Positions 3,534-51,631 are shown, counted from the first letter of the stretch. The stretch is 64,000 nucleotides of DNA from Octopus bimaculoides (GCF_001194135.2 NC_068990.1:88037504-88101503); one strand, 5' to 3'. Notes: generated by a model not told the origin, from the letters alone. Translations and numbers: made by a program.

Positions 3534-6230
3534 GAAGGTCTCTCTTGGTCAAGATTGACCATGGATCTGTGAATATATGCACAGTCTGGGCAACTGTTTT
3601 TTTGTGGAAGACAGACAGTTGTCATGTATGCAAGTTGCTCCTATCCACATCACTAATATTGCCCGAGGGAAAATCCATCACTTTAGAGCCATTATAGTTT
3701 GGTACCAGTGCCGTCACAAACATTGCTGTCAGAAAACAAGGGACCAAAACAAATACCACAAGGCGTTTCATCAAATGTTCTAACAGTTCTGCCAATCCAC
3801 TTCCCTGATTCATACCTTTTTATCAACCCCAAAAGACTGAAGGGCAAAGTTGCCTCATCAGGATTTGAACTCAGGGTACTTAGAATAGGAACAAATACCA
3901 CAAATCATTCAATTCAACACTCTAATAACTTGACCAAGTCACTGCCTTATATATGAAATAAAAGTATCTGTGTGCATGTATTTAATGTATTTATGTTTGT
4001 GTATGAGTTTGTCAGTATCTACACACAGACGCAGAGACAAGCAAGGAAGAGCAAACTTTGAAATGAAACAAAATTATATATATGTGTGCATGTGTATATA
4101 TATGTATATATATATATATATAATCTGGTTTAATAAATAATACAAATCACTGGCAGACACATAAATAGCCAGTCTCATTACTAACAGATTTCACTGTTTC
4201 ATTCCATCTTCAGTCTCAACTTTCACTGTCCTCCATGTCTACGACTGCATCTGATTGGGTTACTGGTTTTAACAGCTGTCTTTAATGAAGTATTTTAATT
4301 AATGAGTCATGAATCAATTAATTACAAAAAAAAATAAATAAACAAGAAACTGAGGAAATTTAAATCTCTGTTTAAGTGATAATGTCTTTAATAGGACAGC
4401 TGTTTGATTTCACTAGCATCTCATAAAACACAACTTAATATGCAGTCTTGCACACTCACATGGAAATTCATTTATCACTATTACTACAGCAAAGATGGTG
4501 AAGTTGATGCTTTGCTAATGAGCTCAGAATAATGCAGAAACATAGCTGAGATAGTTTCTTGTACATTCTAGAAAAATGAAAATAATATCAATCATTGCTT
4601 ACAATGTTTGTCCATTACTACATATTCATTTCATGTTAACATATATTTGATACTGCCTGTATTAAATATGTTAACATAACTTCACTATTGTTTTTTTATA
4701 CAGATGGCATCTCTGAATAATTTGTTTCCTAAACAATCCTAGTTTTCTACCACAGCCGCCAAATGTACACTCTTGCACATGTCTATTGTGATTTATTTAA
4801 TTACGAGGAAGTATATACTCTGCTAATGAGGTCAGAATAATGTTGAAACACATCTAGAGTTGTCTCCCATATTTACCAGGAAAATGAAAATATTATTATT
4901 GAAGACTATATTATCTAATTGTCCTTCTCATTTAAAAAAGACTGGATGTGATTTGAGAGACATTTGGCTGCTATTCCTAGCAGATAGCATGGTAACTTTG
5001 AGATTCTCTGACTTTGTTTGTGTAACAGTGTGTGTGTGTGTGTCAGTATGTATCAGTGTGTGTGTTTGAATGCATGAAGAGGTATGTAGTATTCATATAT
5101 GTAGATACATTGAAACACCTACACACGTACATACATGTGTGTAAGTTGTTGGCAATATAAATTCAAAATTTTTTTATGTCCAGTGTTTAATTTCATTGCT
5201 TTCTGATATTGGCTTTTCTTACATTTGTTTACACTACGTAAATCGATGCAAATCTTATTAATGCCATTGTCATCAAACTAAACGTGATATTTCTTACAAC
5301 TCTTTACATTCTGAGTTCAAATCCTGCAAAAATCAACTTTACTCTTCAACCCTCTAGAGTAGATGAAATAAATAAAAAAAGACCATCAGATATTAGGGTT
5401 GATATTATTTCATTAACCCCACCTCCTTTCAACATTACTGTGCTAATGCCTAAATTTGAAAATAATTATCATCATTATCCACACCCTCATTATTTTCAAT
5501 TTCATCATCATAGCCATCAAAACTAGCATCATAACCTTCATTGTTACTAGCCTCTTTACAAACCATCAAAGCCATCATTGCCATCATCAGTTTAATGTAA
5601 GGGAAACTTCAATGATAGGATATTAAAGAAATTGAAATTAAAAGAGAATAACACTCCAAAACAGGGGCTAACCTTGTATTGAATAATTACAATACCTTCC
5701 CTTGTATTGGGCCAGTGATGGGGACTCTATGCCAAGTTTAGGGAACCTTTCTAGTACCAGGACCAAATTGTAAGTAAATAAGAATGATGGGAGTGGGAAA
5801 TCCTCAATGAGTTAATTCACTGAAAATTTATTGTAAAGTCAACTCTGATCTAACAGACCAAGATTCAAAGGCAATAAATATAGCTATGACCATCATCACA
5901 AGGGAATATTTTGAGTGATTGTCTTGTATTATTGTCTTATCATTTCATTCTCAGGTCTTAATTATTTAGCAGTCTTTCATAGATCAACAGTATTACTAAC
6001 ACACACACACACACACTCTCTCTCTCTCTCTATTTATCTATCTATCTAACTATGTCCATTATAGTAATCTCCTATTCTGTCTCCCTCTATTCACTTCCTG
6101 CCTGTCCATTTCCTCTTTCTTTCAGCCTCTCATTCTCTCATTCTCTCATTCTCTCATTCTGTCCTTATTTCTAATTTTCGTTATTTCTTTTCTACTTTCA
6201 TTATTCTTTTTGGGCCATTGTCATACACAC

Positions 6231-6989: not shown

Positions 6990-7255
6990 TTGAGAAGACC
7001 TGTCAAGCCAAGTGAGATCACAGCCATGGTTGATGCCAGTGTTGCGTAACTGACACCTGTCCCAGTGGCACATAAAAAGCACTCACAAAACTCTTGGAGT
7101 GGTCGGCATCAGGAAGGGCATCCAGCCATAGAAACCAAGCCAGACTGGATTGTAACCTGGTGCAGCTCTCCATCTTACCAGTTTTCTGTCAAACCATCCA
7201 ACCCATGCCAGCATGGAAAAATGGATGTTAAATGAAGATGATGATGATGATAATG
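6990..7255 (+). mobile_element. RTE-tail SINE/LINE 3' fragment ending in (GAT)n (copies near 12740-13000, 18090-18220, 36490-36680, 48760-49010)
   Basis: Recurrent AGGAAGGGCATCCAGC...CCAACCCATGCCAGCATGGAAA...GTTAAA(TGA)n. Confidence 0.75.
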
Positions 7256-8124
7256 ATATATATATATATTTCAGGAACATAACTGATTCACTACATGCTG
7301 TTTTTCATCATAGATCAGAATTAAATTGATATTGGAAATCATCAGCATTTATACATATCTCAAAACATGGATAAATGGACGTAAAATTAAAGATAACAAT
7401 ATCTATCTGTCAGTCTGTCTGTCTGTATATGTGACGTCCATTTTTTTCCATTTTTTTTTAGTCATTCAACAATAGATTAAGAATATTTATTAGAGACACC
7501 TGCATAAGTTAGAATAAATTCACAACTCTTGAAGGAGGTCAACCTCAACTCACATCTTGGTGCCTCTTTTCAGCAGACAAAGCTGTTGATTTGCAGAAAT
7601 ATAATCACATCAGCATCAAAATACAAACATTGGAATATATATAATAAGAATTCAAAAATAATTTTTGACTTTGGTATAAAAGACCACAAAATATGTGACA
7701 GATTTAAAGTCAATTTAATCATTTTCAGTACTTGATTGATACTTATTTTAAATTCATATTGGCATTTATCTTCTTACAAACACACACACACAAACACACA
7801 CACGCACGCACATGTGCATGCACACACACACACACACATTATCTCAGTATTTAATTAATGCCCCATTGTCAATGAATGCACTGGTATGCAAATGAGAAAA
7901 ATCAGTGCTTTTAGTCATAGCATTTTTCATTCGTAGATACAAATTGCTCTTCTTATCTCACTCTCTCAAAGTAAACACACCTGATGAGCTGGCAATACCC
8001 AGGTGAAACTAGTCAAGTTATTCTTCAATTCATTCTGAAGAGAGATCATTATGGTTGAACAACAAGGTTTATTTACAGAACAAGGCTAAACATATATTAT
8101 TAAACATGCATGTAAACTTATTTA

Positions 8125-8378: not shown

Positions 8379-8663
8379 CCTACTCTCAATTGATAACACT
8401 TGTTTCAAAGAGCTGCTGAGAGATCAATATTCTTTGAGACAAGATGGCATTGTTCTGATATTTCTGTAGGGCAAAGAAATAGAGCCATAGATAAGTAGAA
8501 AGAGAGAATATAATAGAGAAAGAGAGAGAGAGAGAGAGTGTGTGTGTGTGGAAGAGAGAGGAAAAAGGGAGGTGTGGGGAAGACAATGATGTAGAGAAAA
8601 GGAGTCAGGATAGAGAGAGATAGTGTGCGTATGTGTGTGTGAAAGAGGGACAGTGGTAGGTTA

Positions 8664-10025: not shown

Positions 10026-11330
10026 TCTCTCCCTCTCTCTCTCTCTCTTAAAATAGAGTGAGGCCCTTATGTGATACTGGATGCTGCATTGAGCAGTTAA
10101 AAAAGATTACAGCCAGCCATCAGTTGGTAACATGTACTATTTTCCCTAATTGTTTTGGCTGCTTATGTAATCACGAGCAGATATGGATACCCTCTTGCTC
10201 CCCTCCTTACCCTTGATCCAGTGGAGCATTCAGGATGTGATTGCTGGAGAGAAAGAGGGCTGCATCTGGTTCTTATTACAACTGAACAGAATGGCGTATT
10301 GTGAAGTGAAGTGTCTCCCTCAAGAGCACAATATACCTCTTGGGCTGGAAATTGAACTCACAATTGTAAAACAATGAGTCCAAAATCTTAACTACCAGCC
10401 CACACACCTTTATATTGAACAGACATATATTGAAATATATTGAAGCTTCTTCTTTGGCTTTTGTAGCCATCTATTTTACAGATAGGAGAGAGTTGATAGA
10501 GATCTTATTGCTACAATAAGTTTATTGATATTGGTCCCATGACCCCTAATTTAGAAGCAGTACAAAGTTTGTTGATGTATCATTGAGAAGGTCTAATAAT
10601 AAGTTGCTTCATTGGTCTTGTGGTCTATTTTTTAACAAAATAGGAAGTTCGTTGAATGAAGTTTTACTATGTTGACTGAGTCACATATTCACATAGAAAC
10701 TGCCTCCATTTTCTCACTGGGTCAGCAACAAGATGCATTTTGTATGTAGTTGGTAAATTCTGTGAGCTTTAGAAAAGTTTATATTATACAAGAAATTGTA
10801 GCATCTATGCCTTTTCTTCAATGCACTAGCAAGTGATATATGCAACAAGTCAGAAACAAAATGGTTACAATTGAAAACAAGCAACGAACTACGTAGTGAA
10901 CTCAGATTACCTCTATAGTCTATATAAATTTCTTAGGTTTTTGTCATATATATTTTAGACAGTTATTCTGTAACACTGATGTCAGATAATGAAGAAAAAA
11001 GCACAAAGCAAATGCCATTGATAATGGTAAATGTATTGATAATGATAAAGTGTGGATAATGATAATGATGTTTATTGCTAAAACAAAACCTAAAAAAATG
11101 TATTATTTCCTATTCTAATCTATTTACAGATACTTTATAGATTTTGGTCAAAATGGTAGTGAGGTAGAATTAGGGGAAGCTCATGTTTTAATATTTGTTG
11201 ATATTCTTTGTTTTGTCAAATATTGTTTTGTCGCATTGTTTTTATAACTTATTTTTTATTGGCTTTCTGTTTGTTTCTCTAAACTGTGACGTTTGTCATT
11301 TATTTTCTCTGTTTTTAACACATTGTCTTT

Positions 11331-11366
<36 letters not shown>

Positions 11367-23933: not shown

Positions 23934-24920
<987 letters not shown>

Positions 24921-34411: not shown

Positions 34412-34620
34412 TTATGTCATTTTTCTGAGAAGGGGATTAATTTGGTTCTCTCTGTTGCCAAAATCACCTCCATCATTATAGTGGTTGTATTTGCGCACCC
34501 AGCCACCTCGTGGATTGTTTAACTTGAATGGCCATAGGAAGTTGGAAGCGTATTTGAAGTGTTTGCCAACAGTGTGGATTTCATGGATTAAATCTTCCAT
34601 ACAAATGATACCAAAGCGAC
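34412..34620 (-). CDS. RPL7: RPL7 last exon (G)[14 protein letters not shown]...NPLLRKMT-stop
   Basis: Acceptor cttcttttag, TAA at 34412-34414, AATAAA at 34393-34398. Confidence 0.97.
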
Positions 34621-37600
34621 CTAAAAGAAGGAAAAAAACCATAATATATCATAAATAATCAAGTGGATCAAAGAGATTATCAAACAAATTTAAAACAAAA
34701 TACATCAATATTTGTACAATCAAAATATTTATCACTAAAATACTATCCTTTTAACTCAACACATTCAAAGCACAACAAGCCAAAGTAACCACAAAGCAAT
34801 TCTATTTAATGCTTTATACAGTCAATTGGATGCTTTATGTGCATGTATATATAATTCACAATATGGATGTCTGTTCAGATTGTCTTTTAAATTCACTAAC
34901 AAGGATTCGGTCAGACCAGCATTATAAAAGACGTTTGCCCAAAGTGCAACGCAGCATAAATGAACTTAAAACCATGACTTCAGAAACAGTAAGTGGAAAT
35001 GACCAAACAAAAAGTACTAACAGGAACTGGTGACAATATGCTACTACACATGTTTACTGTAACTAAAATTTAATAACAAAATGTTTTTATGTTAGAGGGA
35101 ATTTGCTGCCTTTGTAGAAAGAGAGAGTGCTAAAATTTACTTACCAAGCTTCCTTTCAATGAGAGCATTATCAGTCAATGGAATACGTCGTCCTTCTATT
35201 TTACCATATCCTCTTTTATAGACCAATTCACGAACACTCTTCAGGTTAGGGTACCTAACAATAACAAAAAAAAAATCCATGTCAAAATCAAGATAAAACA
35301 AGCTTATTCAAAGCGACAAGATAAATGTATTTTAATATGATCAAACGATCCCACATCAGGCAAAATATATTTGTAATTTATTTGCCTCTCCGTATATCCA
35401 TAAAAAGATATTCTCACTTAGTCAACTGATAACCTTCAAAGGATATTTTGTCAGCTCATGTTATTCAACACCTCTTCTGTGTAACTTTAGCCTCATTCGA
35501 GAAAAAACTGTCAAAAGTGTTCCTATTTACACCATCTATGTGTGTTTTCTTTGCAGTTTATTAAGCAAACTTACGACATAAAAAAGTGGATTCCTTTCCT
35601 CCATGATTGAAATACTGAGTCGGCATGAAAGTAATTTCCTTTTCGGAAATAGAGTTACAATTTTTTTTTAATGACTTTTTTCTATGTTATCTTTTTCCTT
35701 CTGACATTTGATAGCTGTTACTTTTTGCTTACTTTAGAAGCAAACTACACATAATTCTGTTCACAGTTGTCAATTATAAAATGCTGTGCAAAATCGAACA
35801 CTCACATTTTACTGACACAAGCAACATTAGTAGTGCTCATGCTGAAGTTAAAATGAAAATCACACCACACGAATGATAACATGCCTGGATGGCTGCTTAC
35901 CCCCAAGTGATATAAGGTTCGCAAATCTTGATCATCTGTAAAGTTGCTTTGTTGACTTTGACAAAGACACCATTGTTAATCTGTCTCAGCCTAAACAACT
36001 GCATTACCTTTCTGGGTCGTGGATGGACTCCATTGATACTGGAAAATAGAAATATGAGATAACATACATGAAATATAGGAAACTGAAATAGGAACATTAC
36101 ATTTCATCAAAAGTTGGAGTTATTAATAGTGTTGTAAGGTAGCATTAACCCTTTCTAACACACCTTATGTGTTTCACTTAAATTCTAAAATAATCATCAA
36201 CATTTAACAACCATATTCCATGCAGATATCAACAGTAGATTAAAAAAAATTAGGTCCACAGGAATTGAAATTTGTGGACTAAAAGGTGGTTGAAAGTGGT
36301 GGAGATACAGGAAGATAAGCAAATATACTGACTAGTTCAGATTTTGCAGCCTTCACATACATGTTATTTACAGTTTAGACTGAAAATTAATTGCTTCTGC
36401 TAGATACATAGAACTTAAGATTACAAATGTTGAGCTAGTTCTGCACCAAGTCTATTGCTTTATTCTTTAATACAGGAAGTCACTTTTCCTTACATCATCA
36501 TCATTTAACGTCTGTTGTCCATGCTGGCAAGCAGGGAAGTTGCATCAGACTCTAGTCTGACTCGGCATAATTTTTATAGTTGGATGCCCTTCCAAACACC
36601 AACCACTTGACAAGATTGTGCTGGGTGCCTTTAAGTGGCACCAGCCTTGCAGGTCAATCTTCACCACCATGGAGACCAGTCCTAACAGTTCTGCTGTGGA
36701 ATACCGGTTTACTTGAGCACAGGAAGGTGTCAGGCATCTTGGTCTTCTTTCATCTCACCTGACAAGTCCAGAGTCCTGAGATCATTCTTCAGTACTTCGT
36801 CCCATGTCTTCCTGGGTCTCCCACTTCCACACTTTACATTTACTTTGAGAGATCGGCACTTCTTTATGGAGCTGTCAGCAACCCTCGTCACATGATCAAA
36901 CCAGCAGTCTTCTCTTACACGCAGCCATTAATTCCCATGCCTAACTTCTCTCTCAAAACATTAGCACCATCAGACATGTATACTTATGTATACAAATCCA
37001 GCAGGGTATACTAGCCTCATTCCTTTCTAACCTTCACATGTCCTCTGCATTCAGGGCTCACGTCTCACTATCATGTAGAATGTAAAACACTCATATACAC
37101 CATATAGTTCTCCAAAACCCCAATCTTCACCCAAAATCAAGAGAAAAAAATAAGCTGTTACAATGAGGAGTTAAGAATTTGAAGTAATCTTTTTGTAGTA
37201 ACATACCCTCTAATTCTTATGACAAAAGCCAATTTTGCACCACTGGGAACATAATAGTTTCCAGCTCGGCGAGCTTCACGACGCAGCCTGATCTCCTCAC
37301 GTGCCTGCATGCGATACTCTTTTACATATTTCTCAGCTCGATGAAAGATTGTTATCTTCTTCTTCTTGAGTTTCTGAAGTGAAAGATTAATTATTGGATC
37401 ACTCTACTGTCTTAAAACTAGAATTGGGAAGAGAAAACTCTTTTGCCATTCATCTGTGAAAAAATATTCAGATGGCATATATAAGCTAACAACTATTTAA
37501 CATTCATTCACCTGTTTCAGTTTATAAATCAATAATTCCTTACAGTTGAGTTACATAACCACTAAAGAGAGATTAAAATATTTTTATAAATATCTAGACT

Positions 37601-40600
37601 ACATTTTAACAGATTTTAATAAAAAAAAAAAAATTAAAAAAATTACTGTTCAATTTTTAATCAAAAACAATTTTCCCTTTTCAACATCAATATCTAGTTC
37701 TAATAAAACCATCTCCACTAAAAAGAATGCAAAATGATAAAGGAATAGTAAGAGATACCTACAGCTTTTTTCTGGAGAATATTAGCCTTTCGTTTAATAG
37801 CTTGAGCTTTCCTGGTTTTCCTTCTCTTCAATACACTTTCAGGTACTTTGGGGATTTTTTTTTCACTGGAAAGAAAAATAATTTTCAGATAGAGAAAATA
37901 CAGAAAAAACACTATATTCATGGAATTTAGAAATAACTTCGTAAGAGCTTAAATTAACAATACCAAAAGATGTAATAAGTAAATGAGAAAACAAAATCAC
38001 ACTTACCCATCAGTTTTTTTCCCAGCACTGAAAAATTAAAAGTACACATTGAAAATTTTTTTTGTTACTCAATATTTCAAATAAACCATTTAGAATTTTA
38101 AACTGATGATAATCATCTAAAATATATTTAACTAGAAAACACATATATATTGCATATTATTTGGACTGTTTTTAAAAGCACAATAAAGCACTCAGGATAT
38201 TGTAAGTTGACCTCATCAGCTGAACAGATAATCATCATCATCATCATCGTTTAACGTCCGCTTTCCATGCTAGCATGGGTTGGACGATTTGACTGAGGAC
38301 TGGTGGAATAATGTATAGATTAATAAGGTTTTAATGAAAGCTACAGGGTTAACTTTCCAGATGTTTATAAAATTTGTGTGGCATGATCCTTACTCTTATG
38401 TGGTATGCATTCATAATGCATGGTGCTCAGTATTATTTAACTAAAAAGTAAATATATCACATTCTTCAATGAATTTACTGTTGAAAACATGTAGAATGTT
38501 TGTGAATAAACATGTTTCAATGCTTCGATATTGCCAAAGTGTATGGAGTTAAAAAAGGTTTAACACAGAGTGAGTGATAGTGTGAGGTCTATTGGTTAGG
38601 GTACTGCACTCACAAATGCAAGATGGTGATTTCAATTCTTGGACTGGACAGGGCAAGCATTCCACTTTGCTCCTGCCCACGCAACAGTAAATGAGTAACC
38701 CTACAACTGACTGGCATGCCATTCAGTGGGAATCTGCTCCTGCCCACGCAACAGTAAATGAGTAACCCTACAACTGACTGGCATGCCATTCAGTGGGAAT
38801 CTTATAATCTCTCATATGCTACAAAAACTTAACTAACCCAATGAGCCCTAGAACTTGAAACAGTAAAGGTTGCACACAATAGTGTGGACAAGATATTCTA
38901 GTATCACCTTAACCATTTTAGCATTTAGATTACTCTCCCAAATTTATTGCTTACTTATTAAAACTGTTTTGTATAAATCATACATTATCTTGTAGCTATG
39001 AAATCTCACTGAGAATGATATAGTAGGGTAGGTGTGAGAGGCAGGATCTAGCTGGTTTGAATACAAAGCAGGTAGAATATTTCGCCAGGTTAAATGCTAA
39101 ATGGTTAAGCTCTAGAGCTTTAACAATTAAAAAATGGTTATCTACACAAACAAGACAACACCTGAGTCAATCAGAGGCCTCTACTAACAGTCCCAAATCC
39201 CTCAAACTCTAACCTACAGTTTTAAACAAGGACACATTGGATTCTATAGTTCTAAAACGTTCTGAAAGGACAAGTTAGTCACTGTTGGAATGCTTTTGAT
39301 GAATATGAATGGTGAGCCGGAATTAAAAATCTGATAAAATAATACTCACTCTCCAGTTTTCTTTGCAGCCCTGAAAAATTAAAATGACATCACAGTCATA
39401 TATTGACAAACACAACAAAGTAATTTTCAATATTACATAGCTAATGTTTATATTAAAATTAAGACGTATCTTCATAATCCTCATTAACATTTGTGTCTTT
39501 TTGCTTGCATGGATTAGACAAAATTCATTAAGACAGATTTTCTATGATTGGATGCCACTTCCGAGCACCAACCCTCACCCGTTTTCAAGTATGGTAATAT
39601 TTCTCTATGGCCAGATAACATCTTCACAGATTAGGACGACAGATTAGTAAAGCACGTTTACAACTAGGTTGATGTCAAGATAGAGACACAAGCACACACA
39701 ACTACCTAATTTCCACAAAGCTGTGATTGAACTGGGCTTACAAGACATTTGTCCAAGTGTCATTGCATGAGGCTGAACTGAAAATCATGTGGTTGGGAAG
39801 AACTTAACCACATAGTATTGCTTTAAATATTCAATAATTCTGAAATTTTTTATATGTATAACTTGTCAACAAAATTATTTAATTCCATAAAAGTACAGCC
39901 AGCCATCACTTACCAACAAGTATGGCATAATTATTTTAGGTACCTAGTCATGAGTAAACAGATCCCCCCACAGCCCCTTTAGAGGCAATATCCAGGATAT
40001 CAGCAGGAGGGAGAGAGGGCTGTTTCAGTAGCCTGTTAGTACCTTTAGAGCTGAGTAGATTAGAGCAATCCACTGTCCAGTTCAAGAATTGAACCCATGA
40101 CTTTACCCAGAGTCAAACATCCATAGACAATGACCTTTCACATACTCAACTACACATGAACAAGATAATACTCACACTCGAGTTTTCTTGGCAACACTGA
40201 AAAATTAAAATAACAGCATATTTAAGATCTATATTGATCAACATTTCAATTAAGTGATTTACAATATTATATAAATATGAAAAACATCTAAAGAATTTAC
40301 TGTCTTAAATTACTAAAATATACTGCTTTCATAATCATTTAATGTCTGTTTTCAATGCCGACATGGTTTAGACGGTTTGACTGAAAAGTAGTAAGCCAGG
40401 GAGCGGCACCAGGTTCCAATCTGATTTAGCATGGCTTCTACAGCTGTAGGCTCTTCTTTATACCATTGTGGAAAGTTCCAAGGGACTGTTGAAGAAAAGT
40501 GGGGCAATAATGGGGTGGCTATTCATGTAAAAACAACAAAATAATGGGTTCAATAGGTCAAGTTTTATTTGTGAAATACAGTTGCTTTGAATTTGTTTCA

Positions 40601-43600
40601 AAAAGAGTCCTATGTTTGTGACGTTTAGTTGGGGTGGGGGTGCCAGGAATGTTGCCCAGGTGTCAAGGGGGCAACAGCCCAAAAATTCCTGGGAACCAAT
40701 GATGTAGAACATATGTAAGGATTTACACCACTTCATTCTTCTATGAGACCACCTATCCTTATAGATGGTTGGTTATCACTTATCCTATTAAGTTTATTTG
40801 TAATTTCTTACTACCGATTACAGCTGAATAGATTTAAGCAATGCACTGCCCTGTTCAAGAATTGAACCCATGACTTTACTCAGAGTCAAACATCCATAGA
40901 CAACGAGCGTTCACATATTCAACTACATATCAACAAGGTAATACTCACGTTCTAGTTTTCTTCAAAGGACTGCAAAATAAAAATAACAGTATATTACACA
41001 TCTATATTGATCAACATTTCAAATTAAGTGATTTACAATATATTGGCACTGGTGCATAATTATTGCAGCGTTTTTTGGGCGAAATTTTATCAACAAAAAC
41101 ATCTTTAAATGATTATTCTGGAGCATATTTACCATCTACTTCAATTAATGCTCACAATTTGCTTGGCAGACAGTCAGGCCGTCATTTAAAGATGTTTTTG
41201 TGGCATTAAATTTCTTCAAACTAAGCCGCAATAATTATGCACCAACCCAATATGAATATGAAAACCATCTAAAGAATTTACGGTCTCAAATTACTAAAAT
41301 ACACTGCTTTCATAATCCTTTAACGTCTGTTTTCATCGCTGGCATGGGTTAGACAGTTTGACTGAAAAGCAGTAAGCCACACCAGGTTCCAATCAGATCG
41401 AGAATGGTTTCTAAAGCTGGATGCCCTTCCGTACACCGTTGTTAAAACGATGATAATCATTATTCACCTTTATACATGTAGAGCTGTGGTTCCCAAAGTG
41501 GACTATTGCCCATTCCACTCCACCCCCCTGGGAGCAGTGGAAGGTTCAAAGTGGACATTGAAGAAAAGCGGGGCAATAATTGGTAGTGATTCATATAAAA
41601 ACAAAATAAAGGGTTAGCTTAAGTTCTATTTGTGAAATATAGTAACTTTGAATTTGCTTCAGAAAGCAGTCTATATTTGTGATGGTTAGTTAGGGTGAGG
41701 GTGCTAAGAATGTCACCTGGGCGTCAAGGGGGCAACAGCACAAAAATGCCTGGGAACCACTGATGTAGAGCATGTGTGAGGATTTACACCACTTCATTCC
41801 TCTAAGAGACCACCTATCTTTATAAGTGGTTGGTTATCACTTATCTTATTAAGTTTATTTGTAATTTCTTACTACCCATTACAGTTGAATAGATTTGAGC
41901 AATGCACTGCCCAGTTCAAGAATCAAACCCATGACTTTACCCAGAGTCAAACATCCATAGACAATGACCTTTCACATACTCAACTACATATCAACAAGGT
42001 AATACTCACGTTCTAGTTTTCTTCACAGGACTGAAAAATTAAAATAATAGCATATTAAACATTTATATTGATCAACATTTCAATTAAGTGATATACAATA
42101 TATTTGCGCTGGTGCATAATTATTGCAGCATTTTTTTGGCAAAATTTATTCAACAAAAACATCTTTAAATGATTATTCTGGAGCATATTTACACTCTCTG
42201 AGTAGTTGGCGTTAGGAAGGGCATCCAGCTGTAGAAACTCTGCCAGATCAGATTGGAGCCTGGTGTAGCCATCTGGTTTCACCAGTCCTCAGTCAAATCG
42301 TCCAACCCATGCTAGCATGGAGAGCAGATGTTAAACGGTGATGATGATGATGATGATTTACCATCTACTTCAATTAATGCTCACCATTTGCTTGGCAGAC
42401 AGTCAGGCCATCATTTAAAGATGTATTTGTGGCATTAAATTTCTTCAAACTAAGCTGCAATAATTATGCACCAACCCAATATAAATATGAAAACCATCTA
42501 AAGAATTTACGGTCTCAAATTACTAAAATACACTGCTTTCATAATCCTTTAACGTCTGTTATCATCGCTGGCATGGGTTAGACAGTAAGCCAAAGAGCCA
42601 CACCAGGTTCCAACCAGATTGAGAATGGTTTCTAAAGCTGGATGCCGATCCTTACACCGTTGCTAAAACAATGATAATCATTATTCACCTTTATACATGT
42701 AGAGCTGTGGTTCCCAAAGTGGACAGTATTGCACATTCCACCCCACCCCCCTGGCAGCAGTGGAAGTTTCAAAGTGGACATTGAAGAAAAGCGGGGCAAT
42801 AATTGGTAGTGATTCATATAAAAACAAAATAATGGGTTAGGTTAAGTTTGTGAAATACAGTTACTTTGAATTTGCTCCAGAAAGCAGTCTGATTGTTAGG
42901 GTGGGGGTGCAAGGAATGTCGTCTGGGCGTCAAGGGGGCAACAGCCCAAAGATGCCTGGGAACCAATAATGTAGAGCATATGTAAGGATTTACACGACTT
43001 TATTACTCTTAAGAGACTACCTATCTTTATAGGTGGTTAGTTATCACTTATCTTATTAAATTTATTTGTAATTTCTTATTACCCATTACAGCTGAATAGA
43101 TTTAAGCAATGCACTGCCCAGTTCAAGAATCGAACCCATGATTTTACCCAGAGTCAAACATCCATACACAATGACCTTTCACATACTCAACTACATATCA
43201 ACAAGGTAATACTCACGCTACAGGTTTCTTCGCATCACTGAAAAATTAAAATAACAGCATATTAAACACTTATATTGATCAACATTTCAATTAAGTGATT
43301 TCCAATATAAATATGAAATATAAATATGAAAACCATCTGAAGAATTTACTGTCTCAAATTACTAATATACACAGCTTTCATAATCCTTTAACGCCTGTTT
43401 TCATCGCTGGCATGGGTTAGACAGTAAGCCAAAGAGCCACACCAGGTTCCAATCAGATTGAGAATGGATTCTACAGCTGGATGCCCTTCCTTACACCGTT
43501 GTTAAAACAATGATAATCATTATTCACCTTTATACATGTAGAGCTGTGGTTCCCAAAGTGGACAGTATTGTCCACCCCTGTGGCTGGTGGGAGGTTCAAA

Positions 43601-46600
43601 GTGGGCATTGAAGAAAAGTGGGGCAATGAGTAGTAATTCATAACAAAATAAAGGGTTAGCTTAAGTTTTACTTGTGAAATACAGTTGCTTTGAATTTGCT
43701 TCAGAAAGCAGTCTATGTTTGTAATGGTTAGTTAGGGTGAGGGTGCTAGGAATGTCACCTGGACGTCAAGGGGGCAACAGCCCAAAAATACCTGGGAACC
43801 ACTCATGTAGAGCATGTGTAAGGATTTACACCATTTCATTCGTCTAATAGACCACCTATCTTTATAGGTGGTTGGTTATCACTTATCTTATTAAGTNNNN
43901 NNNNNNNNNNNNNNNNNNNNNNNNNNNNNNNNNNNNNNNNNNNNNNNNNNNNNNNNNNNNNNNNNNNNNNNNNNNNNNNNNNNNNNNNNNNNNNNNGGTT
44001 AAGTTTTATTTGTGAAATACAGTTACTTTGAATTTGCTTCAGAAAGCAGTCTATATTTGTGATGGTTAGTCAGCCTGGGCTTCAAGGGGGCAGCAGCCCA
44101 AAAATACCTGGGAACCACTCATGTAGAGCATGTGTAAGGATTTACACCACTTCATTCCTCTGATAGACCACCTATCTTTATAGGTGGTTGGTTATCACTT
44201 ATCTTATTAAGTTCATTTGTAATCTCTTACTACCCATTACAGTTGAAAAGATTTGAGCAATGCACTGCCCAGTTCAAGAATTGAACCCATGACTTTACCC
44301 AGAGTCAAACATCCATAGACAATGACCTTTCACATACTCAACTACATAACAAGTTAATACTCACGCTACAGGTTTCTTCGCAGCACTGAAAAATTAAAAT
44401 AACAGCATATTAAACACTTATATTGATCAACAGTTCAATTAAGTGATTTCCAATATTATATAAATATGAAAACTATCTGAAGAATTTACTGTCTCAAATT
44501 ACTAAAATATACTGCTTTCATAATTGTCATTAAATGTCTGGTTTCCATGCTGGCATGGGTTAGACTGACTGAAAACTAGTAAGCCTGGTTCCAATCTTAT
44601 TTAGCATGGTTTCTACGTCTGGATGCCCCTCCTTACACGATTGTTAAAACAATGATATTGCCTTTAAACATGTAGAGCATGTGTAAGGTGTTATACCACT
44701 TCATTCTTCTAACTGACCACCTACTCTTATAGGTGGTTCGTTATCACTTATCCAATTAAGTTTATTAATTTCTTACTTTTATATGCTTATCATTAAAACT
44801 TGGCATATATATGAATGTTACTGTTTAATTTATGTCAACATAATTTTAATACAAATACTATTTTAATTATAAAAAAAATATTTACCCTTTATCAGCCACC
44901 TTCTTCCTAAAAAGAAAAAAACAAAAACAATTAGTTTGAAATTGAAGAGACAAAAATTCTAGTTAGCTTTAAATTCATTGCAATACAACACATTTTTAAA
45001 CTATCCCTTTTCCACAATAACTAAGAAATTAACCATTACAAAATGAAAAATATTTAATCCTTTAGCAACCAGCCAAAATATTTGACCCATTTTATATTCA
45101 AACTGACTAGATCCAACCTTTCCACCATACCCTACAATGCCATTCTAAGAATAAAAAACTGTCACACCATGCATTATCTCAAAGCTATGAGATAATGCAT
45201 GGTTAATACAAAGCAGTGATTAAAATAAGCATTACATTTTAACAATCTGAATGCTAATGGATTAAATCTGAAATTTTATTAGAATACTGAAAACACTTGT
45301 TTACAGTACCATATACTAACCAGATTAACACAGTTGGTATAACAAAATTTCAATGTAAATTTTATTAAATCATTGATCAAACATATTTTCATTAGGTAAA
45401 CGCTTATATATAATCTGACATTGATGTACCAAATTTTATGTTCTCTTGGAATTAGGCCATTTCTATTACATTCTAGTCTTTTTTTAAAAATTACATGAAC
45501 TTCAGATTTAGGAAAAGCAACTTAATTAGAAAGATTTCCAAAGGAAGTAGCTACAGTGAGACAAAGAAGAAGTATAATCCATAGCAGAGTTTTAACAAAA
45601 TGTGAATAGAATTTGAATAGCTGTACTAAAAGCAATAATAAATTGATTCTAATAAGTAAATAGAGTGAAAATATTTTCCCTATTTTATATTTGTCCTGGT
45701 TTAATATATATGGTAATATTTAGAGTAGCTTGCAGAACCTGTCAGTTGTACTCCAGATATCACTTGAAAATAATAAACTGTTTTCTATGAAAGTAGCTTA
45801 GAAAATTCATTAAAACACATTATAGTTAAAAAGTGTACTAACAAAAAAGTAAAAACTTATATTGAATATTTTAATACATTATATATAACAAAATAATACT
45901 CACTCTGCAGGTTTCTTTGCATCTCTGAAAAATTTAAATTATATCATATGAAAAGTGGTTTTCAATATTAATAATATAGGCAAATTGAAATAAAAAGATA
46001 AGTGCTTAAATAACTAAATATTAAAGCGTAGTGGTTTGATTACATTCATAGCAAAAGTGTATAAACTGATTTTCTGTTTCAGAATTATAGTTACAAGCTG
46101 ACTTTCTTCACTCTTGGAAGATGTTTCATACCAAAAAATGTTCATTGCCCATTCAATTCAATCTATTGATACTGTTAATTCTTTTCATATTATGAAACAC
46201 AATGTCTAATTGTTTGCTGTTAATCAAAATAATCTGCAGTTGTCTACCCAGCTATGTGGCATTATTTCTACAAACTTTATTACTATAACATTGATTTAGC
46301 ACTTTCGATGATAAACTATAATGAAAAATAGAAAAATACTTAGGAAGATTTTAGTTTGAAACACCAAGACTAACAAAAGCAAGGCAGTTGCTTCTAATCA
46401 GCCCTCAATAGATACTGTTGGCAGAAACAGTCAAACAATATTAGATACTTGTTTGAGGTCAAAAGAAGACTACATAATCTTAAATAAGCAATACTCACTT
46501 GCAATTTAGAAATTTCATAATTTTTCACAGCAAGAAACCCAATGAAACAGCATAAACAATTAAACCTTACACCTATAAGCTCTCTCTGGTATGCAAATAC

Positions 46601-49600
46601 TAAAATTTGTTTTAATGATTTAAAACAATGTCAACAAAACAATCAGCTGAGAAAGAAAAACATTTCCATCTCCAACAAAATACATAGTTCAATTAACTTT
46701 ATACTCACGGCTTCTTTGCTACTTCTTTCTTCCTACAAAAATAAGAAAAAAAAATGTTTAATCATCTACATTTTACTATTACGAGTGTAAAACAAGACGG
46801 CTATGCTGAAATATTCATCAGAAAGATTAGAAAGACAACAAAAGTCCCACAAGGTACATAGTTCAAAACTTTTGTTGAAAAATTATGGTTAGCATGACAG
46901 CAACTCCAAAACACTTAGACAAAAAATAAATTTAAAAATCATATTTCAGTTATCTCTCATCTCTATATGTATTCACCTCTTCAGCAAGACACTTGCCAAT
47001 TTCATATCCCTCAGTACCATAGCAAACTTAGTTGGCAGATCTTGTCTTAAAGGTATTTGATGACCTCACCAGTGCTGGTGCCACACACACACACACACAC
47101 ACAAGCACCCAGCAAACTCTTAAGTGGCTGGCACTAGGAAGGGCATCCAGCTGTAAAAAAAATTAAAAAGCATGCTACAGTAGACACTGGAGCTCAATGC
47201 AGCCCTCTGGCCCATCAGTTCATGTTGAACCGTACAACCCAAACCAATATGGATTATACAGTTCAACATGAACCAGACATCTATTACTGAAGAGATGGGA
47301 CATGTTGAAATCACGTGATCAGGCAGTTACAGCATCCATAGCTGACGATTCTTATCTGCCAGTACTATGCGTGTGCTTATATACACATTGCATCCACAGG
47401 AGGTCCTCGAGTTAGATAAAATGCAATATTTGGCACTAACAATATCCACATTAAGTTGGATATAGATTGCTTTTATATATATATATATATAGCAAAAAAG
47501 AGACACTGAGAGTGAATTAAGCAGACATGATGTGATAGTGAAATGTCTGACAAAAGCAATTCTGCCATAGACAGCATCTATGTCGGTTTCAATCTACTTA
47601 TAACACATGACAGCCAAAGCATCACACTTTAAACAGCTTGGTTCAAGAGCCACATATACAACTCATAGTGTCCAGAAATATTTTCTAGTGAATTATGATT
47701 GCATGATATTAAGACCATCTTTTTAAAAAATTAAAACAAATTGCTATTACTAAGACCTTGTTACAAACAAAGGTGACAAAACTACTTACTTCTCCACTTT
47801 CTTTGGCCTAGAAAAGAAGAAAATATTTTTGTTAGTTACATGATATATTTACAAACATTAGATGGGATTATATTTAATTTACAATAAATTATTTCAATTA
47901 TTTAAGGCAAACACAAGTAAAACGCTAATTTTTTTCACTTTAATGTTTTTGTCTGTATTTAATTTCAATTTGCATAGGTTCTTCAATTCGCTACAATATC
48001 TTTAAAGTAAACAAAATCAAAAATTTTAATTGGTGGCGGGGGAGAAGAGGTGGGGGGATTAAAATTTTTTTTGCATGTTTGTAATCTCCAACATCTAAAA
48101 TGTAGGAATCTGAAAAATTCTTTTTTTTTTAAATGCATTTTCCAAGGAGAGGTACGAAACTGCATTAGCCCCAAATATAATATTATTTAACAATGTCTTA
48201 TGAACACAAAATAGATACTTACGCTTCAGCCTTTTTTGGAGTCCTGAAAAATTAAAATACATAAATGATTTATATAAATGAACATGTCAATTTTTTTTAC
48301 AAAATTACATTTCTTACTGAAAAAGACTAAGCTATGCTGCCATCATATCACAGCAGTATTATAAAAGGTGAACTGTTTTTGCTATTCAAAGCTACATGTC
48401 AGCGGCAAAGATATGTGTGTGTGTGTGTGTGTATGTATGNNNNNNNNNNNNNNNNNNNNNNNNNNNNNNNNNNNNNNNNNNNNNNNNNNNNNNNNNNNNN
48501 NNNNNNNNNNNNNNNNNNNNNNNNNNNNNNNNNNNNNNNNNNNNNNNNNNNNNNNNNNNNNNNNNNNNNNNNNNNNNNNNNNNNNNNNNNNNNNNNNNNN
48601 NNNNNNNNNNNNNNNNNNNNNNNNNNNNNNNNNTGCCATGATTTAGTTCTTGACAAAAGAGGGGTGTTTGTTGACTGTGACATCTACTGAAGGTTACAGA
48701 TTATTTACAAAAACACCATTGACAAGAACAATGTGTACAGATGGATGAAAATGTGACATCATCATCATCGTCGTCGTTTAACGTCCGCTTTCCATGCTAG
48801 CATGGGTTGGACGATTTGACTGAGGACTGGTGGACCAGGAGGCAACACCATGCTCCAATCTGATTTGGCAGAGTTTCTACAGCTGGATGCCCTTCCTAAT
48901 GCCAACCACTCCGAGAGTGTAGTAGGTGCTTTTACGTGCCACCGGCACGAGGGCCAGTCAGGCGGTACTGGCGACGGCCACGCTCGAAATGGTGTAACTT
49001 TTACACAAATCACTAATAAGTGGGTGGATTGAATTAGACATATGAGTGGCAATCTCTGAGTTTGCTGCACAACTAGATTGTGGTCACAATGCATTATAAA
49101 AGATGGGAGTCTGAGGAATCACATTAACTCTTGATTTGAAGGAAAGAAGGGTGGTTTGCTCTGATGCAAGCATTTGAAGATTATGAAAACATTTTTCCTA
49201 ATTTAGTGACAAGGGATGAAACGTAGCCATATTTCATGATCCAGAACTGAAGGCTTAGTTCATGGTATAGTGACAGTCCTTCTCCAAAACCTGAAACATT
49301 CAAGAACCAGCAACCATCACAGAATGGGATGACAAAGGCCTCATTTTCCTTGCACCAGGAATAACAAGTAGTACATTGGGACACTCAAAAAGCTTAAAAG
49401 TCATAATAAGGAAGATATCCAGTAAGAATCTGAATTCACCATGACAATGTGCAAGCAGACAAGCAACAAACCAGACAATCAGTGAATTAGGCTGATCAAT
49501 GGCCCTTCATTAAGATCCGACACCCTCCTCAAACTTCCACCTATTTGATCGATTGATAGGCAGACCCCAGGTTTACAAAATGACCGCAAAAGGTACAACA

Positions 49601-51178
49601 GTGAGCAGCTCATTTTTTCAAAGATGATTCAAGTGTTAGGTCCAACGATAGTGCAGATGCATTGCCTGTGATAGAGGCTATCAGTAGTATCTTTACATAG
49701 AAGAGTTATTCTACTAACATGTGCAATTTGAATGACCAATACCAATAAGTCATCTTCTGCATTATTTTTGTCAGAATCCATGTGAAAACTTAAACAGGAT
49801 ATTAACAATATACGAATTTATTACACATACCGATAAAAAAGAAATAATTTCGTTGAAATCAGACCAAACCAGAGTGAAAAAATGTCCTAATCTATTAAGA
49901 TCTTGCTTTTAGTGTTATTTTTTTAATTATAAATGGTCGGGTACTGATATTCGCAGAGTTCAATACAATCTATCAACATATATCCACATTGATCACACTA
50001 TGACAAATTCAAAATATAATGCTTTTAACCAATTTACAAACGATTGATTTTGTTAGGGTAATGGGTACCGATAAATACATCTTAATATTGGTGACTAATT
50101 TTCAATATCAGTTATTGATATTATAAAGAACCCCTATACAAAAAAAAATCTCTATATAGTCTAAGGATGTTATAACATAATTTCCATAGAAGTTTCAAAC
50201 ACCAAGCACTCCATAAGAGTACTAAAGTAACATTCGACAGAACTCAACTAAATCAACAGAAGCAGGGCGCCAAGAATTTCAAGACTGATGTGTACAAAGT
50301 GATCAATCTTCTTGCATCTAGCTTCTAAAATCTAATTGTTGAATGGAAAATTCTACCCATCTTATAAACCACTGGTGGCAAAGAATACGTACAACACCCG
50401 TTTTCGGCCTAACAAAAACCCTAAACACTGGGTGTGCGTATTTTTTACTTTCACCAGTTTCAACACACAACACCGAAATAAAGCTGAACAGTTGCTCCAT
50501 CACCAGTAACACTGAGCAGCGATAAATCATAAACATTTGAGGTATTTAATGTTCAGAATATTAAGTCAAGTAGGACATGTAAAACAATAATTCTGTTTGA
50601 AAATTAAGGTGTCGCCTTTAACAATCGGGACAGCCTGTGCAGAACAAATATTTCTGATTCAAAGAACGTGTCCAGGACAACCAATATTCCATATGCCCAT
50701 CCCTTCGAATAATGAAGGTGCCTACTACTTCTAGCAGTTCGAATGATCAGAGAGAGAAGACACGTTAAATGATTGTTCCATCCCTTGAAGAGAAACTTCT
50801 CTCGGAGTATAACAGCTACATGTCTATACACAGAACCACTAAAGTCCATGACACTCAAGTACACTGAATATAAGATTTACAAAACTGGTTTATGTTATTG
50901 ATCAACTTTAAATGTCTTTTTAATAATCCTCAAAAAAATAACGCACTTCTTATTCTGCTCGTGCTTCTGGATGTATTTCAGTGCCACATAAACATTATTC
51001 AGTAATTCTGATTCATTTGATTAAAATGTTTTACGTTATAGATTTCGCATGCAAGTATTTTTAAAAGGTTGCCAATATTTAAGTGTGGATGCCACAAAAA
51101 GATAAACTGATGCTGGGAAATTATACAAAGTTGATGTATTTAATGTATGAACTTAAAATATACTCACTCTACAACCAT
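34412..51178 (-). CDS. RPL7: 60S ribosomal protein L7 (uL30), whole spliced CDS span; 18 coding exons, 990 nt, 329 aa in this model
   Basis: The exons join in frame with GT-AG boundaries. Core peptides [70 protein letters not shown] and NFLWPFKL...GGDFGNRE are diagnostic of uL30. Confidence 0.95.
35145..35254 (-). CDS. RPL7: RPL7 exon [36 protein letters not shown]
   Basis: 110 nt, ttgttag acceptor / gtaagt donor, phases 2 to 1. Confidence 0.97.
35901..36038 (-). CDS. RPL7: RPL7 exon [45 protein letters not shown]
   Basis: 138 nt, ttttccag acceptor / gtaagc donor. Confidence 0.97.
36715..37080 (-). mobile_element. Degenerate RTE LINE 3' fragment in an RPL7 intron
   Basis: Similar to the 20963-21178 fragment (GRPRKTW-type coding) and upstream ETWALNAED...RLERNE, with stops. 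Confidence 0.7.
37207..37373 (-). CDS. RPL7: RPL7 exon [20 protein letters not shown]...KLAFVIRIR
   Basis: 167 nt, ctttcacttcag acceptor / gtatgt donor. Confidence 0.96.
37763..37865 (-). CDS. RPL7: RPL7 exon [34 protein letters not shown]
   Basis: 103 nt, tttctttccag acceptor / gtaggt donor; starts in phase 2. Confidence 0.95.
38007..38027 (-). CDS. RPL7: RPL7 micro-exon, 21 nt (xAGKKTDG)
   Basis: ttttaatttttcag|TGCTGGGAAAAAAACTGATGG|gtaagt. Confidence 0.88.
38668..38801 (+). repeat. Perfect 67-bp tandem duplication inside a SINE relic
   Basis: TGCTCCTGCCCACGCAACAG...GTGGGAATC twice (38668, 38735). Confidence 0.9.
39350..39370 (-). CDS. RPL7: RPL7 micro-exon, 21 nt (xAAKKTGD)
   Basis: ttttaatttttcag|GGCTGCAAAGAAAACTGGAGA|gtgagt. 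Confidence 0.86.
40176..40196 (-). CDS. RPL7: RPL7 micro-exon, 21 nt (xVAKKTRV)
   Basis: ttttaatttttcag|TGTTGCCAAGAAAACTCGAGT|gtgagt. Confidence 0.82.
40949..40969 (-). CDS. RPL7: RPL7 micro-exon, 21 nt (xPLKKTRT)
   Basis: tttttattttgcag|TCCTTTGAAGAAAACTAGAAC|gtgagt. Confidence 0.78.
41041..41252. mobile_element. Mariner-derived MITE (second copy 42101-42481 carries a nested SINE piece 42193-42355 with ATTTAC duplication)
   Basis: TIR TATTGGGTTGGTGCATAATTATTGCGG resembles mariner TIRs; TA flanks. Confidence 0.8.
41484..41762 (+). mobile_element. hAT-type MITE with 8-bp TSD (further copies 42705-42968, 43544-43804; partial copies ending near 40702 and 44120)
   Basis: Termini C(T/A)GTGGTTCCCA / TGGGAACCACTG flanked by ATGTAGAG on both sides. 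Confidence 0.85.
42010..42030 (-). CDS. RPL7: RPL7 micro-exon, 21 nt (xPVKKTRT)
   Basis: ttttaatttttcag|TCCTGTGAAGAAAACTAGAAC|gtgagt. Confidence 0.8.
43217..43237 (-). CDS. RPL7: RPL7 micro-exon, 21 nt (xDAKKPVA)
   Basis: ttttaatttttcag|TGATGCGAAGAAACCTGTAGC|gtgagt. Confidence 0.82.
44365..44385 (-). CDS. RPL7: RPL7 micro-exon, 21 nt (xAAKKPVA)
   Basis: ttttaatttttcag|TGCTGCGAAGAAACCTGTAGC|gtgagt. Confidence 0.82.
44886..44906 (-). CDS. RPL7: RPL7 micro-exon, 21 nt (xKKVADKG)
   Basis: gttttttctttttag|GAAGAAGGTGGCTGATAAAGG|gtaaat; weaker donor than the others. Confidence 0.72.
45904..45924 (-). CDS. RPL7: RPL7 micro-exon, 21 nt (xDAKKPAE)
   Basis: tttaaatttttcag|AGATGCAAAGAAACCTGCAGA|gtgagt. 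Confidence 0.85.
46709..46732 (-). CDS. RPL7: RPL7 micro-exon, 24 nt (xKKEVAKKP)
   Basis: cttatttttgtag|GAAGAAAGAAGTAGCAAAGAAGCC|gtgagt. Confidence 0.83.
47790..47807 (-). CDS. RPL7: RPL7 micro-exon, 18 nt (xPKKVEK)
   Basis: tcttcttttctag|GCCAAAGAAAGTGGAGAA|gtaagt. Confidence 0.83.
48223..48243 (-). CDS. RPL7: RPL7 micro-exon, 21 nt (xTPKKAEA)
   Basis: ttttaatttttcag|GACTCCAAAAAAGGCTGAAGC|gtaagt. Confidence 0.86.
49140..49720 (+). mobile_element. Heavily decayed mariner transposase in an RPL7 intron (antisense to host)
   Basis: Fragments across frames: LVTRDET* (IVTGDETW), [24 protein letters not shown]; many stops and frameshifts. Confidence 0.7.
51168..51178 (-). CDS. RPL7: RPL7 start-codon exon (17-nt exon 51168-51184; coding part MVV+GA)
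   Basis: ctattttcag|GACATC-ATG-GTT-GTA-GA|gtgagt; ends in phase 2, matching all downstream micro-exons. Confidence 0.82.
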
Positions 51179-51548
51179 GATGTCCTGAAAATAGGGAAAC
51201 ACAAAAAAATAATTAGTATACAAAATACATTAGATTTAGAAATTTAACTACAAAAAGAAGACAAAAAATAGCTGAACAAAATATAATTATTGCTTAAGAA
51301 CACGTGTTAAATGATCGTATCAAAAAATAAGGAAAATAAATCGGCCATGGAGTACGTTACCACGTTGTTGAGTAGAATGTAGATTTTAAACGGATAATCT
51401 ATGATTTACAAAGACATATAAATAATAATTACTATTAAATAATATTAAATGAATATATACGATACATTTGTTAATGTTTACGAAGGAATTTTACCTCTAC
51501 AAATGCCGATGATAAAAGATTTAAACGCGAGTAACAATATGTACTTAC

Positions 51549-51631
51549 AATTTAGCTGACAAGCAACACTAAAAAGGAAGTCACGCAGAGAATTCTTCCC
51601 GAATAGCACATCTGCGAAAAAACCCGGAAGT
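51549..51631 (-). promoter_or_regulatory. RPL7: RPL7 non-coding exon 1 with 5'-TOP/TCT start (CTTCCTTTTT at 51580-51571) and an upstream ETS/GABP-type site
   Basis: The pyrimidine run typical of ribosomal protein mRNA 5' ends lies 32 nt before a gtaagt donor (51543-51548). CCGGAAGT is at 51624-51631. Confidence 0.75.

Follow-up and report, generated by a model that had tools for sequence, protein, structure and literature searches.

How does the gene of a ribosomal protein, a member of a class of textbook compact housekeeping genes, come to hold a chain of tiny exons, and what kind of protein do these exons make? The question is raised by the RPL7 locus of Octopus bimaculoides, encoding the ribosomal protein uL30. 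It lies within a stretch of 64,000 nucleotides, or 64 kb (GCF_001194135.2 NC_068990.1:88037504-88101503), below called the window, and positions are counted from the first letter of this stretch unless another species is named. Between the start exon and the first conventional exon of the gene lie 12 micro-exons spread over 10.2 kb, one of 18 nt, ten of 21 nt and one of 24 nt. We consider it likely that the N-terminal tail of octopus uL30 is built from at least 12 tandem-duplicated symmetric micro-exons, that these are mostly constitutive, and that their product is flexible and polycationic.

The locus occupies about 51.6 to 34.4 kb of the window on the minus strand, and all micro-exons are on this strand. 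The spliced product, encoded by the 12 micro-exons and five conventional exons after the start exon, has 329 residues. It shows 100% identity, with 99% of its length aligned, to the RefSeq protein XP_052826945.1 ("60S ribosomal protein L7, partial [Octopus bimaculoides]"), 89% identity to L7 of O. sinensis and about 70% to L7 of bivalves and gastropods. Both domains of the uL30/RPL7 family score over the curated cut-offs, Ribosomal_L30_N (PF08079) with 83.0 bits against 31.6 and Ribosomal_L30 (PF00327) with 63.7 against 23, and the comparison with uL30 chains of solved 80S ribosomes from PDB yields E-values from 1e-94 to 1e-180. The gene is that of O. bimaculoides uL30/RPL7, to which the original prediction had already assigned the exons. 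The conserved uL30 core of 245 residues comes from the ordinary exons, and the micro-exons, with about 26% of the coding sequence (255 of 990 nt), add an N-terminal tail of ~85 residues or more. If all twelve micro-exons were skipped, an in-frame protein of 245 residues would be left, which is the usual size of mollusc L7.

The micro-exons were found exactly where they had been predicted, and the introns on both sides of each one are in phase 2: the first base is the third position of a codon, and the last two bases start the next codon. Each micro-exon encodes one six- to eight-residue unit of the form x-x-K-K-x-x-x. Micro-exon 1 (48223-48243, 21 nt, (E/A)TPKKAE-A) is identical in 20 of 21 positions to nucleotides 8418-8438 of the O. 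sinensis locus. Micro-exon 2 (47790-47807, 18 nt, PKKVE-K), which is skipped in the O. sinensis isoforms X6/X7, coincides with 10238-10255 of that locus in all 18 positions, and micro-exon 3 (46709-46732, 24 nt, KKEVAKK-P) matches 11338-11361 in 23 of 24. All the others are 21 nt long. Micro-exon 4 (45904-45924, DAKKPA-E), 19/21 identical to its O. sinensis orthologue, is paralogous to the family of micro-exons 6-12. Micro-exon 5 (44886-44906, KKVADK-G) has a GTAAAT donor, the only one in the array, where the donors are otherwise GTAAGT or GTGAGT. Five young tandem units start with micro-exon 6 (44365-44385, AAKKPV-A) and continue with micro-exons 7 (43217-43237, DAKKPV-A), 8 (42010-42030, PVKKTR-T), 9 (40949-40969, PLKKTR-T) and 10 (40176-40196, VAKKTR-V). 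They are followed by micro-exon 11 (39350-39370, AAKKTG-D), where the identity with the orthologue is 15/21 in the exon vs 228/237 in the flanks, and micro-exon 12 (38007-38027, AGKKTD-G).

Every micro-exon is preceded by a pyrimidine tract and CAG or TAG. Seven of them (1, 6, 7, 8, 10, 11 and 12) have one and the same acceptor, TTTTAATTTTTCAG, as had been noticed earlier, and micro-exon 9 has the variant TTTTTATTTTGCAG. When the entire window was scanned on both strands with strict criteria (a pyrimidine tract followed by AG, then 15-27 nt with the frame open in phase, then a donor resembling GTRAGT), 17 candidates were obtained; eleven are RPL7 micro-exons, all clustered, co-oriented and KK-coding, and the one RPL7 micro-exon of the twelve that is outside this set falls narrowly under the pyrimidine count. 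Chance is excluded as the explanation of the array. One more candidate obtained with laxer settings, at 50447-50427 (KKYAHP) in the intron running from 51167 to 48244, was rejected, as it has no pyrimidine tract and a poor donor.

The claim that any subset of the micro-exons can be spliced in frame with no stop codon also held: the frame stays open in all 4096 subsets, and no frame other than the one used is open in all 12 exons. However, this property follows from duplication of one symmetric exon coding for Lys, Ala and Pro, and hence it provides no evidence of design.

The other exons of the gene have the following arrangement. A putative non-coding first exon (51549-51580, minus strand, with boundaries placed from sequence features) has a start similar to a terminal oligopyrimidine tract, CTTCCTTTTT, followed by a GTAAGT donor; the region containing it aligns collinearly to the O. 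sinensis locus with 84.6% identity. The start exon (51168-51184, minus strand, 17 nt, GACATC ATG GTT GTA GA) has the donor GTGAGTAT, and its last two bases open a codon; exons of this type are common to the O. sinensis and Argonauta orthologues. The first conventional exon (37763-37865) opens the conserved N-terminal domain of uL30 and has a GTAGGT donor. It is followed on the same strand by conventional exons at 37207-37373, 35901-36038 and 35145-35254, and by the last coding exon, including the stop codon, at 34412-34620.

Tails of comparable kind are present in other octopods: O. sinensis isoforms X1-X7 (343, 336, 335, 328 and 322 residues), O. vulgaris CAI9728784.1 (336 residues) and Argonauta hians GAB1603021.1 (281 residues). 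Mapping of the X1 protein to the gapless O. sinensis locus (L001) yields 14 micro-exons, of 18, 21, 21, 21, 18, 24 and 24 nt, then seven of 21 nt. The Argonauta hians locus (L003) is a compact 6-kb gene with five micro-exons, of 18, 21, 21, 21 and 21 nt. In both species the phases and the types of acceptors and donors are the same as in O. bimaculoides. Thus, the array is older than the split between argonauts and octopuses, and was expanded in Octopus. The micro-exon architecture is common across the Octopoda, with 5, at least 12 and 14 units in the three species, and its recurrence agrees with the predicted assignment of these exons to RPL7.

The comparison bears on the possibility that the array is an artefact of annotation or assembly, the micro-exons being unused in mature mRNA or resulting from misassembled repeats. 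Two gaps fall into the array, one of them flanked by paralogous copies. Moreover, the protein search with the tail and the first 50 residues of the core produced no scored hit, probably due to low-complexity bias, and in the metagenome and metatranscriptome contigs of the Joint Genome Institute we observed no match either to the junction of micro-exons 1-2-3 or to a 35-nt conventional-exon junction shared without change by three octopods. On the other hand, the same architecture is seen in the gapless O. sinensis assembly and in that of Argonauta, and the exons are present in four independent annotations. The NCBI pipeline places all 12 of them in its single O. bimaculoides model. Since ab initio methods are unable to place exons as short as 21 nt, the models containing them are likely based on transcript evidence. 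Further, metatranscriptome data contain two cDNA-like contigs without introns (961 and 1169 nt), which encode uL30 of 295 and 341 residues with tails rich in Lys, Ala and Pro. One of these proteins is 78% identical to the octopus protein, vs at most 72% for non-cephalopod uL30 among the matches listed; the other one was not compared directly. The contigs provide mRNA-level evidence for Lys/Ala/Pro tails of uL30 in a related lineage, probably of cephalopods. Given these observations, an artefact is highly improbable.

The expectation that standard gene predictors miss these exons turned out to be wrong, as the RefSeq and O. vulgaris models contain them and a 343-residue sequence is carried by a chain of a ribosome structure. 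In the structure of the O. bimaculoides ribosome (PDB 9EHO), chain F is listed as the 343-residue "L7 isoform X1". The sequence of this chain is identical to the O. sinensis model, not to the O. bimaculoides protein encoded here, and the use of the O. sinensis-type sequence is presumably explained by the O. bimaculoides model being partial. In the library searched, micro-exons, ribosomal proteins and octopus are brought together by no paper, and we found no description of the RPL7 array. The gene structure is already in public annotation, and appears to be undescribed in the literature.

While all 12 predicted micro-exons are real, their number should be treated as a lower bound for O. bimaculoides, since two assembly gaps fall into introns of the array. 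Both gaps are intronic, and any unit hidden in them would preserve the frame. The first gap (48440-48633) is in the intron after the start exon. The sequence on its upstream side aligns to position ~5112 of the O. sinensis locus L001, and that on the downstream side aligns to positions 7039, 7654 and 8234. The O. sinensis interval replaced by the gap is about 2-3 kb long and contains exons at 5330 (18 nt, SKKGDK) and at 7239 and 7838 (identical 21-nt exons, ASKKAEA). A search of the window allowing up to 3 mismatches revealed no copy of the SKKGDK exon, consistent with its place being in the gap. As judged from this alignment, the gap probably hides one to three further micro-exons of the 18-nt SKKGDK type and the 21-nt ASKKAEA type. 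It is due to this gap that the RefSeq model XP_052826945.1 is 5'-partial and, given the partial model and the gap in between, the direct junction of the start exon with the exon ending at 48243 is unproven.

The second gap (43897-43996), between micro-exons 6 and 7, interrupts no codon. Past the gap, the sequence steps back by about 214 nt relative to where it had broken off: the last 214 nt ahead of the gap and the initial 236 nt behind it are identical in 203 of 214 positions (94.9%), with a 22-nt indel. One could suggest that the gap is spurious and its flanks are overlapping ends of the same sequence, but the flanks differ at 5% of positions and by the 22-nt indel, and this rules out such an explanation. 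Judging by the alignment, the flanks are paralogous copies of one intron segment and not a continuous sequence. The gap may correspond to a partial duplication of the intron, or to at least one whole hidden unit with a 21-nt exon, and the frame would hold in either case. The locus serves as a practical warning that arrays of this kind are collapsed into gaps by short-read assemblies, and that the numbers of exons and the "partial" models obtained for them require support from long reads.

The suggestion that the micro-exons have a common origin was borne out by the paralogy of nine of the 12 exon sites (1, 4 and 6-12) together with their flanks. Tandem Repeats Finder did not report the array, the units of about 0.8-1.2 kb being longer than its maximum period of 500, and for this reason the unit structure was established by alignment. 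Micro-exons 6-10 (window positions 44385-40176) are young tandem duplicates of about 0.8-1.2 kb. O. sinensis has an additional second 24-nt exon, and O. bimaculoides has the additional pairs AAKKPV/DAKKPV and PVKKTR/PLKKTR. The alignments show that the array expanded as exon-plus-intron units of about 0.6-1.2 kb were duplicated in tandem, and that the copy number differs between the sister species.

The exons of the young units have diverged about three times more than their surroundings. Pairwise differences among micro-exons 6-10 are 27% in exons vs 8.3% in flanks, and variable columns comprise 10 of 21 in the exon vs 37 of 201 in the flank (Fisher p = 0.004, from a small sample of non-independent units). 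The changes in the exons are mostly non-synonymous, and the AAGAAA (Lys-Lys) core is invariant. This contrast may be due to selection on the exon being relaxed or diversifying, or else to constraint or homogenisation of the intron flanks. Between orthologues of O. bimaculoides and O. sinensis, the identity is 87.8% in exons and 92.4% in the 120-nt flanks, decreasing to about 80% in the four 3' micro-exons. The Lys-Lys core, the frame and the splice sites are retained in 31 of 31 exons of the three species. Thus, it is the length, phase, splice signals and charge that selection maintains, and not the exact residues, and this pattern fits a disordered tail; the fast divergence of exons is also compatible with diversifying selection.

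An alternative is that the tail is functionally indifferent, and the number of exons drifts by unequal crossing-over and is tolerated, as the tail is disordered and situated at the surface. The variable copy number (5, at least 12 and 14) is what such a drift would produce; the exons are no more conserved than the introns, the introns contain interspersed repeats, and the tail has no match among protein families: in the Pfam search Ribosomal_L30_N begins only at residue 95 of the 329-residue model. However, all 31 exons of the three species retain the frame, splice sites and Lys-Lys core, no dead, decayed copies of micro-exons were found in the window, and a tail of similar composition is seen in the mRNA-like contigs from another cephalopod lineage. 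These three observations speak for selection acting both on whether the tail is present and on its charge, and we regard purely neutral growth as possible, but rather doubtful.

Several elements are seen in the introns of the gene. A short interspersed element (...GGGCATCCAGCTGTAGAA...CCATGCTAGCATGGAAAGCGGACGTTAAACGATGATGATGA) is present in both orientations in RPL7 introns, at about 48990-48760, 42380-42200, 38310-38230 and 36640-36500. It is not tRNA-like according to ARAGORN and matches no Rfam family. Its copies could serve as substrates for unequal crossing-over. Insertions resembling miniature inverted-repeat transposable elements, with inverted ends GGGTTGGTGCATAATTATTGC...GCAATAATTATGCACCAGC, are situated in the introns that follow micro-exons 7 and 8 (at about 42490-42100 and at about 41250-41050, in minus-strand reading). 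They were identified by eye only, as was a further element nested in the copy after micro-exon 7. The intron between micro-exons 11 and 12 contains a perfect tandem duplication, two copies of 67 bp at 38668-38802. The Rfam and tRNA scans of the window revealed no intronic snoRNA or tRNA-like gene.

A different question is whether the exons are chosen. The original prediction proposed a modular protein of tunable length. This was supported in part, as the differences among the O. sinensis isoforms X1-X7 correspond precisely to whole micro-exons, namely one of 21 nt, one of 24 nt and a pair of 18 and 24 nt. The isoforms were read as whole-exon skips from the protein alignment, since splice-mapping produced spurious split exons due to the duplicated exons being identical. 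Compared to X1, isoforms X2/X3 are without one of the twin ASKKAEA exons, X4 is without the 24-nt EKKVAKKP exon, X5 is without one twin ASKKAEA exon and the 24-nt EKKVAKKP exon, and X6/X7 are without the 18-nt and the first 24-nt exons and one twin ASKKAEA exon. On the other hand, all these events are confined to the 5' part of the array, one of them is ambiguous, and the O. bimaculoides model has all 12 micro-exons. The ambiguity concerns the twins. The O. sinensis segments 7239-7259 and 7838-7858 (L001) are identical, including at least 16 nt of the acceptor flank and 9 nt of the donor flank, so that the skip of a twin exon cannot be assigned to either copy and its short-read support is ambiguous. 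For the octopus cassette as a whole, phase compatibility is shown, and combinations are seen as five protein lengths in the RefSeq models of the sister species only.

Regulated combinatorial splicing would mean that tissues or stages select subsets of micro-exons, tuning the length and charge of the tail and producing distinct ribosomes. It agrees with the 4096 open subsets, with the whole-exon differences among the O. sinensis isoforms X1-X7, with the fast divergence of exon sequences, and with the good conservation of intron flanks between species (92%), as is typical of regulated micro-exons. But the isoform differences are limited to the 5' part of the array, the two exons of one event are identical, flanks included, so that short reads give ambiguous junctions, the models of O. 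bimaculoides and O. vulgaris are single, near-full forms, and frame compatibility arises automatically from duplicating a symmetric exon. A UGC enhancer close upstream of the acceptor is the mark of neural micro-exons of the SRRM4 type. In the array, TGC (UGC) occurs within 40 nt upstream of the acceptor in only four of the 12 micro-exons (6, 7, 8 and 10), which are recent copies of one unit, and this also speaks against regulation. All in all, regulated choice of subsets seems unlikely, and neither regulation of the neural type nor heterogeneity of ribosomes gained support in this analysis. Slightly more doubtful still is the stronger proposal that tissue- or stage-specific uL30 tails of varied length and charge, produced from an array resembling schistosome micro-exon genes, act as a splicing dial for ribosome heterogeneity; were the tails regulated, the fast, mostly non-synonymous divergence of exons would reflect selection on the tail.

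We prefer the reading of a mostly constitutive array yielding a flexible polycationic tail. Chains of exons of 18-24 nt are hard for the spliceosome to recognise. The tiny exons may be recognised through the long pyrimidine tract with CAG or TAG, the donor whose complementarity to U1 extends to position +8 (GTRAGTAT), and the purine-rich AAGAAA core, which may double as an exonic splicing enhancer. The donors of the micro-exons match the U1-complementary GTAAGTAT at 7-8 of 8 positions, vs 5-7 for the conventional exons. Most micro-exons would be included by default, and occasional skipping of single units would be tolerated because every unit is in phase. The encoded tail contains 33% Lys, 18% Ala and 10% Pro and has a net charge of +22. 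In the AlphaFold2 model, based on an alignment of 37 sequences, residues 1-93 form a coil with the predicted local distance difference test (pLDDT) value of about 50, and a long helix is seen at 94-155; the tail is predicted to be disordered. The product would be a flexible disordered polycationic tail preceding the long N-terminal helix of uL30 at the surface of the large subunit. There it may contact or neutralise RNA, or aid nuclear import and assembly, similar to the H1-like Lys/Ala/Pro tails of ribosomal proteins from insects and trypanosomes.

Several points weigh against this reading. The AlphaFold2 model is poor overall (mean pLDDT 59), and hence the low values in the tail are weak evidence for disorder. 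Inclusion of all 12 exons in O. bimaculoides rests on the RefSeq gene model. The preprint behind 9EHO, whose subject is the break in 28S rRNA, never mentions uL30 or any extension. We infer the enhancer role of AAGAAA and all functions ascribed to the tail, and the same is true for the mostly constitutive inclusion, some of the O. sinensis exons being alternative.

Of the known systems, the closest in architecture are the schistosome micro-exon genes (MEGs) and fast skeletal troponin T, and the closest in protein chemistry are the Lys/Ala/Pro tails of other ribosomal proteins. In PMC4350168, MEGs are described as runs of very small symmetric exons, fast-evolving and with species-specific expansion of families, whose skipping can yield near-identical proteins. 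In the same source, MEG products are described as secreted proteins with signal peptides and a mostly micro-exonic coding sequence, and MEGs are said to be restricted to platyhelminths (PMC4350168). In octopus RPL7, too, symmetric exons of very small size, with lengths divisible by 3, are situated between conventional ones. However, it encodes a housekeeping ribosomal protein, the micro-exonic share of its coding sequence is the above 26%, and no signal peptide is seen in its N-terminus, MVVETPKKAEAPKK, which is hydrophilic, no dedicated signal-peptide predictor having been run. With neither a secreted product nor a mostly micro-exonic coding sequence, octopus RPL7 works like a MEG but is not one.

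Fast skeletal troponin T has alternative exons 4-8 encoding a charged variable N-terminal segment, with seven tandem P exons in some birds (PMC11016001, citing Breitbart et al. 1985). Like octopus RPL7, it has consecutive phase-compatible mini-exons, with tandem copies encoding a peptide repeat. The difference is that troponin T splicing is developmentally regulated and its segment is acidic, whereas the octopus segment is basic and the protein is ribosomal.

Low-complexity tails outside the conserved core are known in other ribosomal proteins. Mosquito RpS6 and RpL23a have H1-like Lys-rich extensions, and L7a of Trypanosoma cruzi has an Ala/Lys/Pro repeat domain whose repeat number varies between strains. 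These tails are similar to that of octopus uL30 in being Lys/Ala/Pro tails, and such tails arose independently in separate lineages, with repeat numbers differing by strain or species. However, they belong to other ribosomal proteins, and the special feature of the octopus tail is that each repeat is encoded by one micro-exon; the exon layout of the mosquito and trypanosome genes is absent from their descriptions.

A case from the same family is rodent RPL7, which reportedly, in work by Lin and co-workers from 1987, has N-terminal basic repeats of 12 residues. The L7 chains in PDB have 270 residues in mouse, 260 in rat and 248 in human. In both rodents and octopuses, the basic repeats are just upstream of the conserved N-terminal helix and vary in number, if the rodent repeats are as reported, but the rodent extension is much shorter than the octopus tail. 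We know of no indication that the rodent repeats are encoded by micro-exons.

Finally, the neural micro-exons of bilaterians, dependent on SRRM4/eMIC, fall in the same size class (at most 27 nt), are multiples of 3 and have conserved flanking introns. They differ from the octopus exons in that RPL7 is a ubiquitously expressed host, and that the upstream UGC is seen at only four of 12 acceptors.

The locus thus shows a MEG-like mechanism at work on a core ribosomal protein: a charged tail is built and resized by tandem duplication of tiny exons, each of which encodes one peptide repeat. It offers a natural system, spread across an animal order, for studying how the spliceosome recognises chains of 18-24-nt exons in a gene expressed ubiquitously and at a high level. 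It is also a system for the growth of disordered tails of ribosomal proteins, and for the question of whether splice variation of ribosomal proteins exists and matters, which is timely because the structure of the O. bimaculoides ribosome (9EHO) is available.

Outside the RPL7 gene, a 254-residue open frame at 24156-24920 on the plus strand contains the pore motif TIGFGD and matches Pfam Ion_trans_2 with E = 2e-15. This frame probably represents the terminal exon of a gene for a two-pore-domain potassium channel, situated downstream of RPL7 on the opposite strand. The segment 25400-27700 is extremely AT-rich and microsatellite-like (GC content of 0.18 for 26-28 kb) and includes several small gaps. 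At 16-18 kb there is another block of similarly low GC, which has a gap of 749 N.

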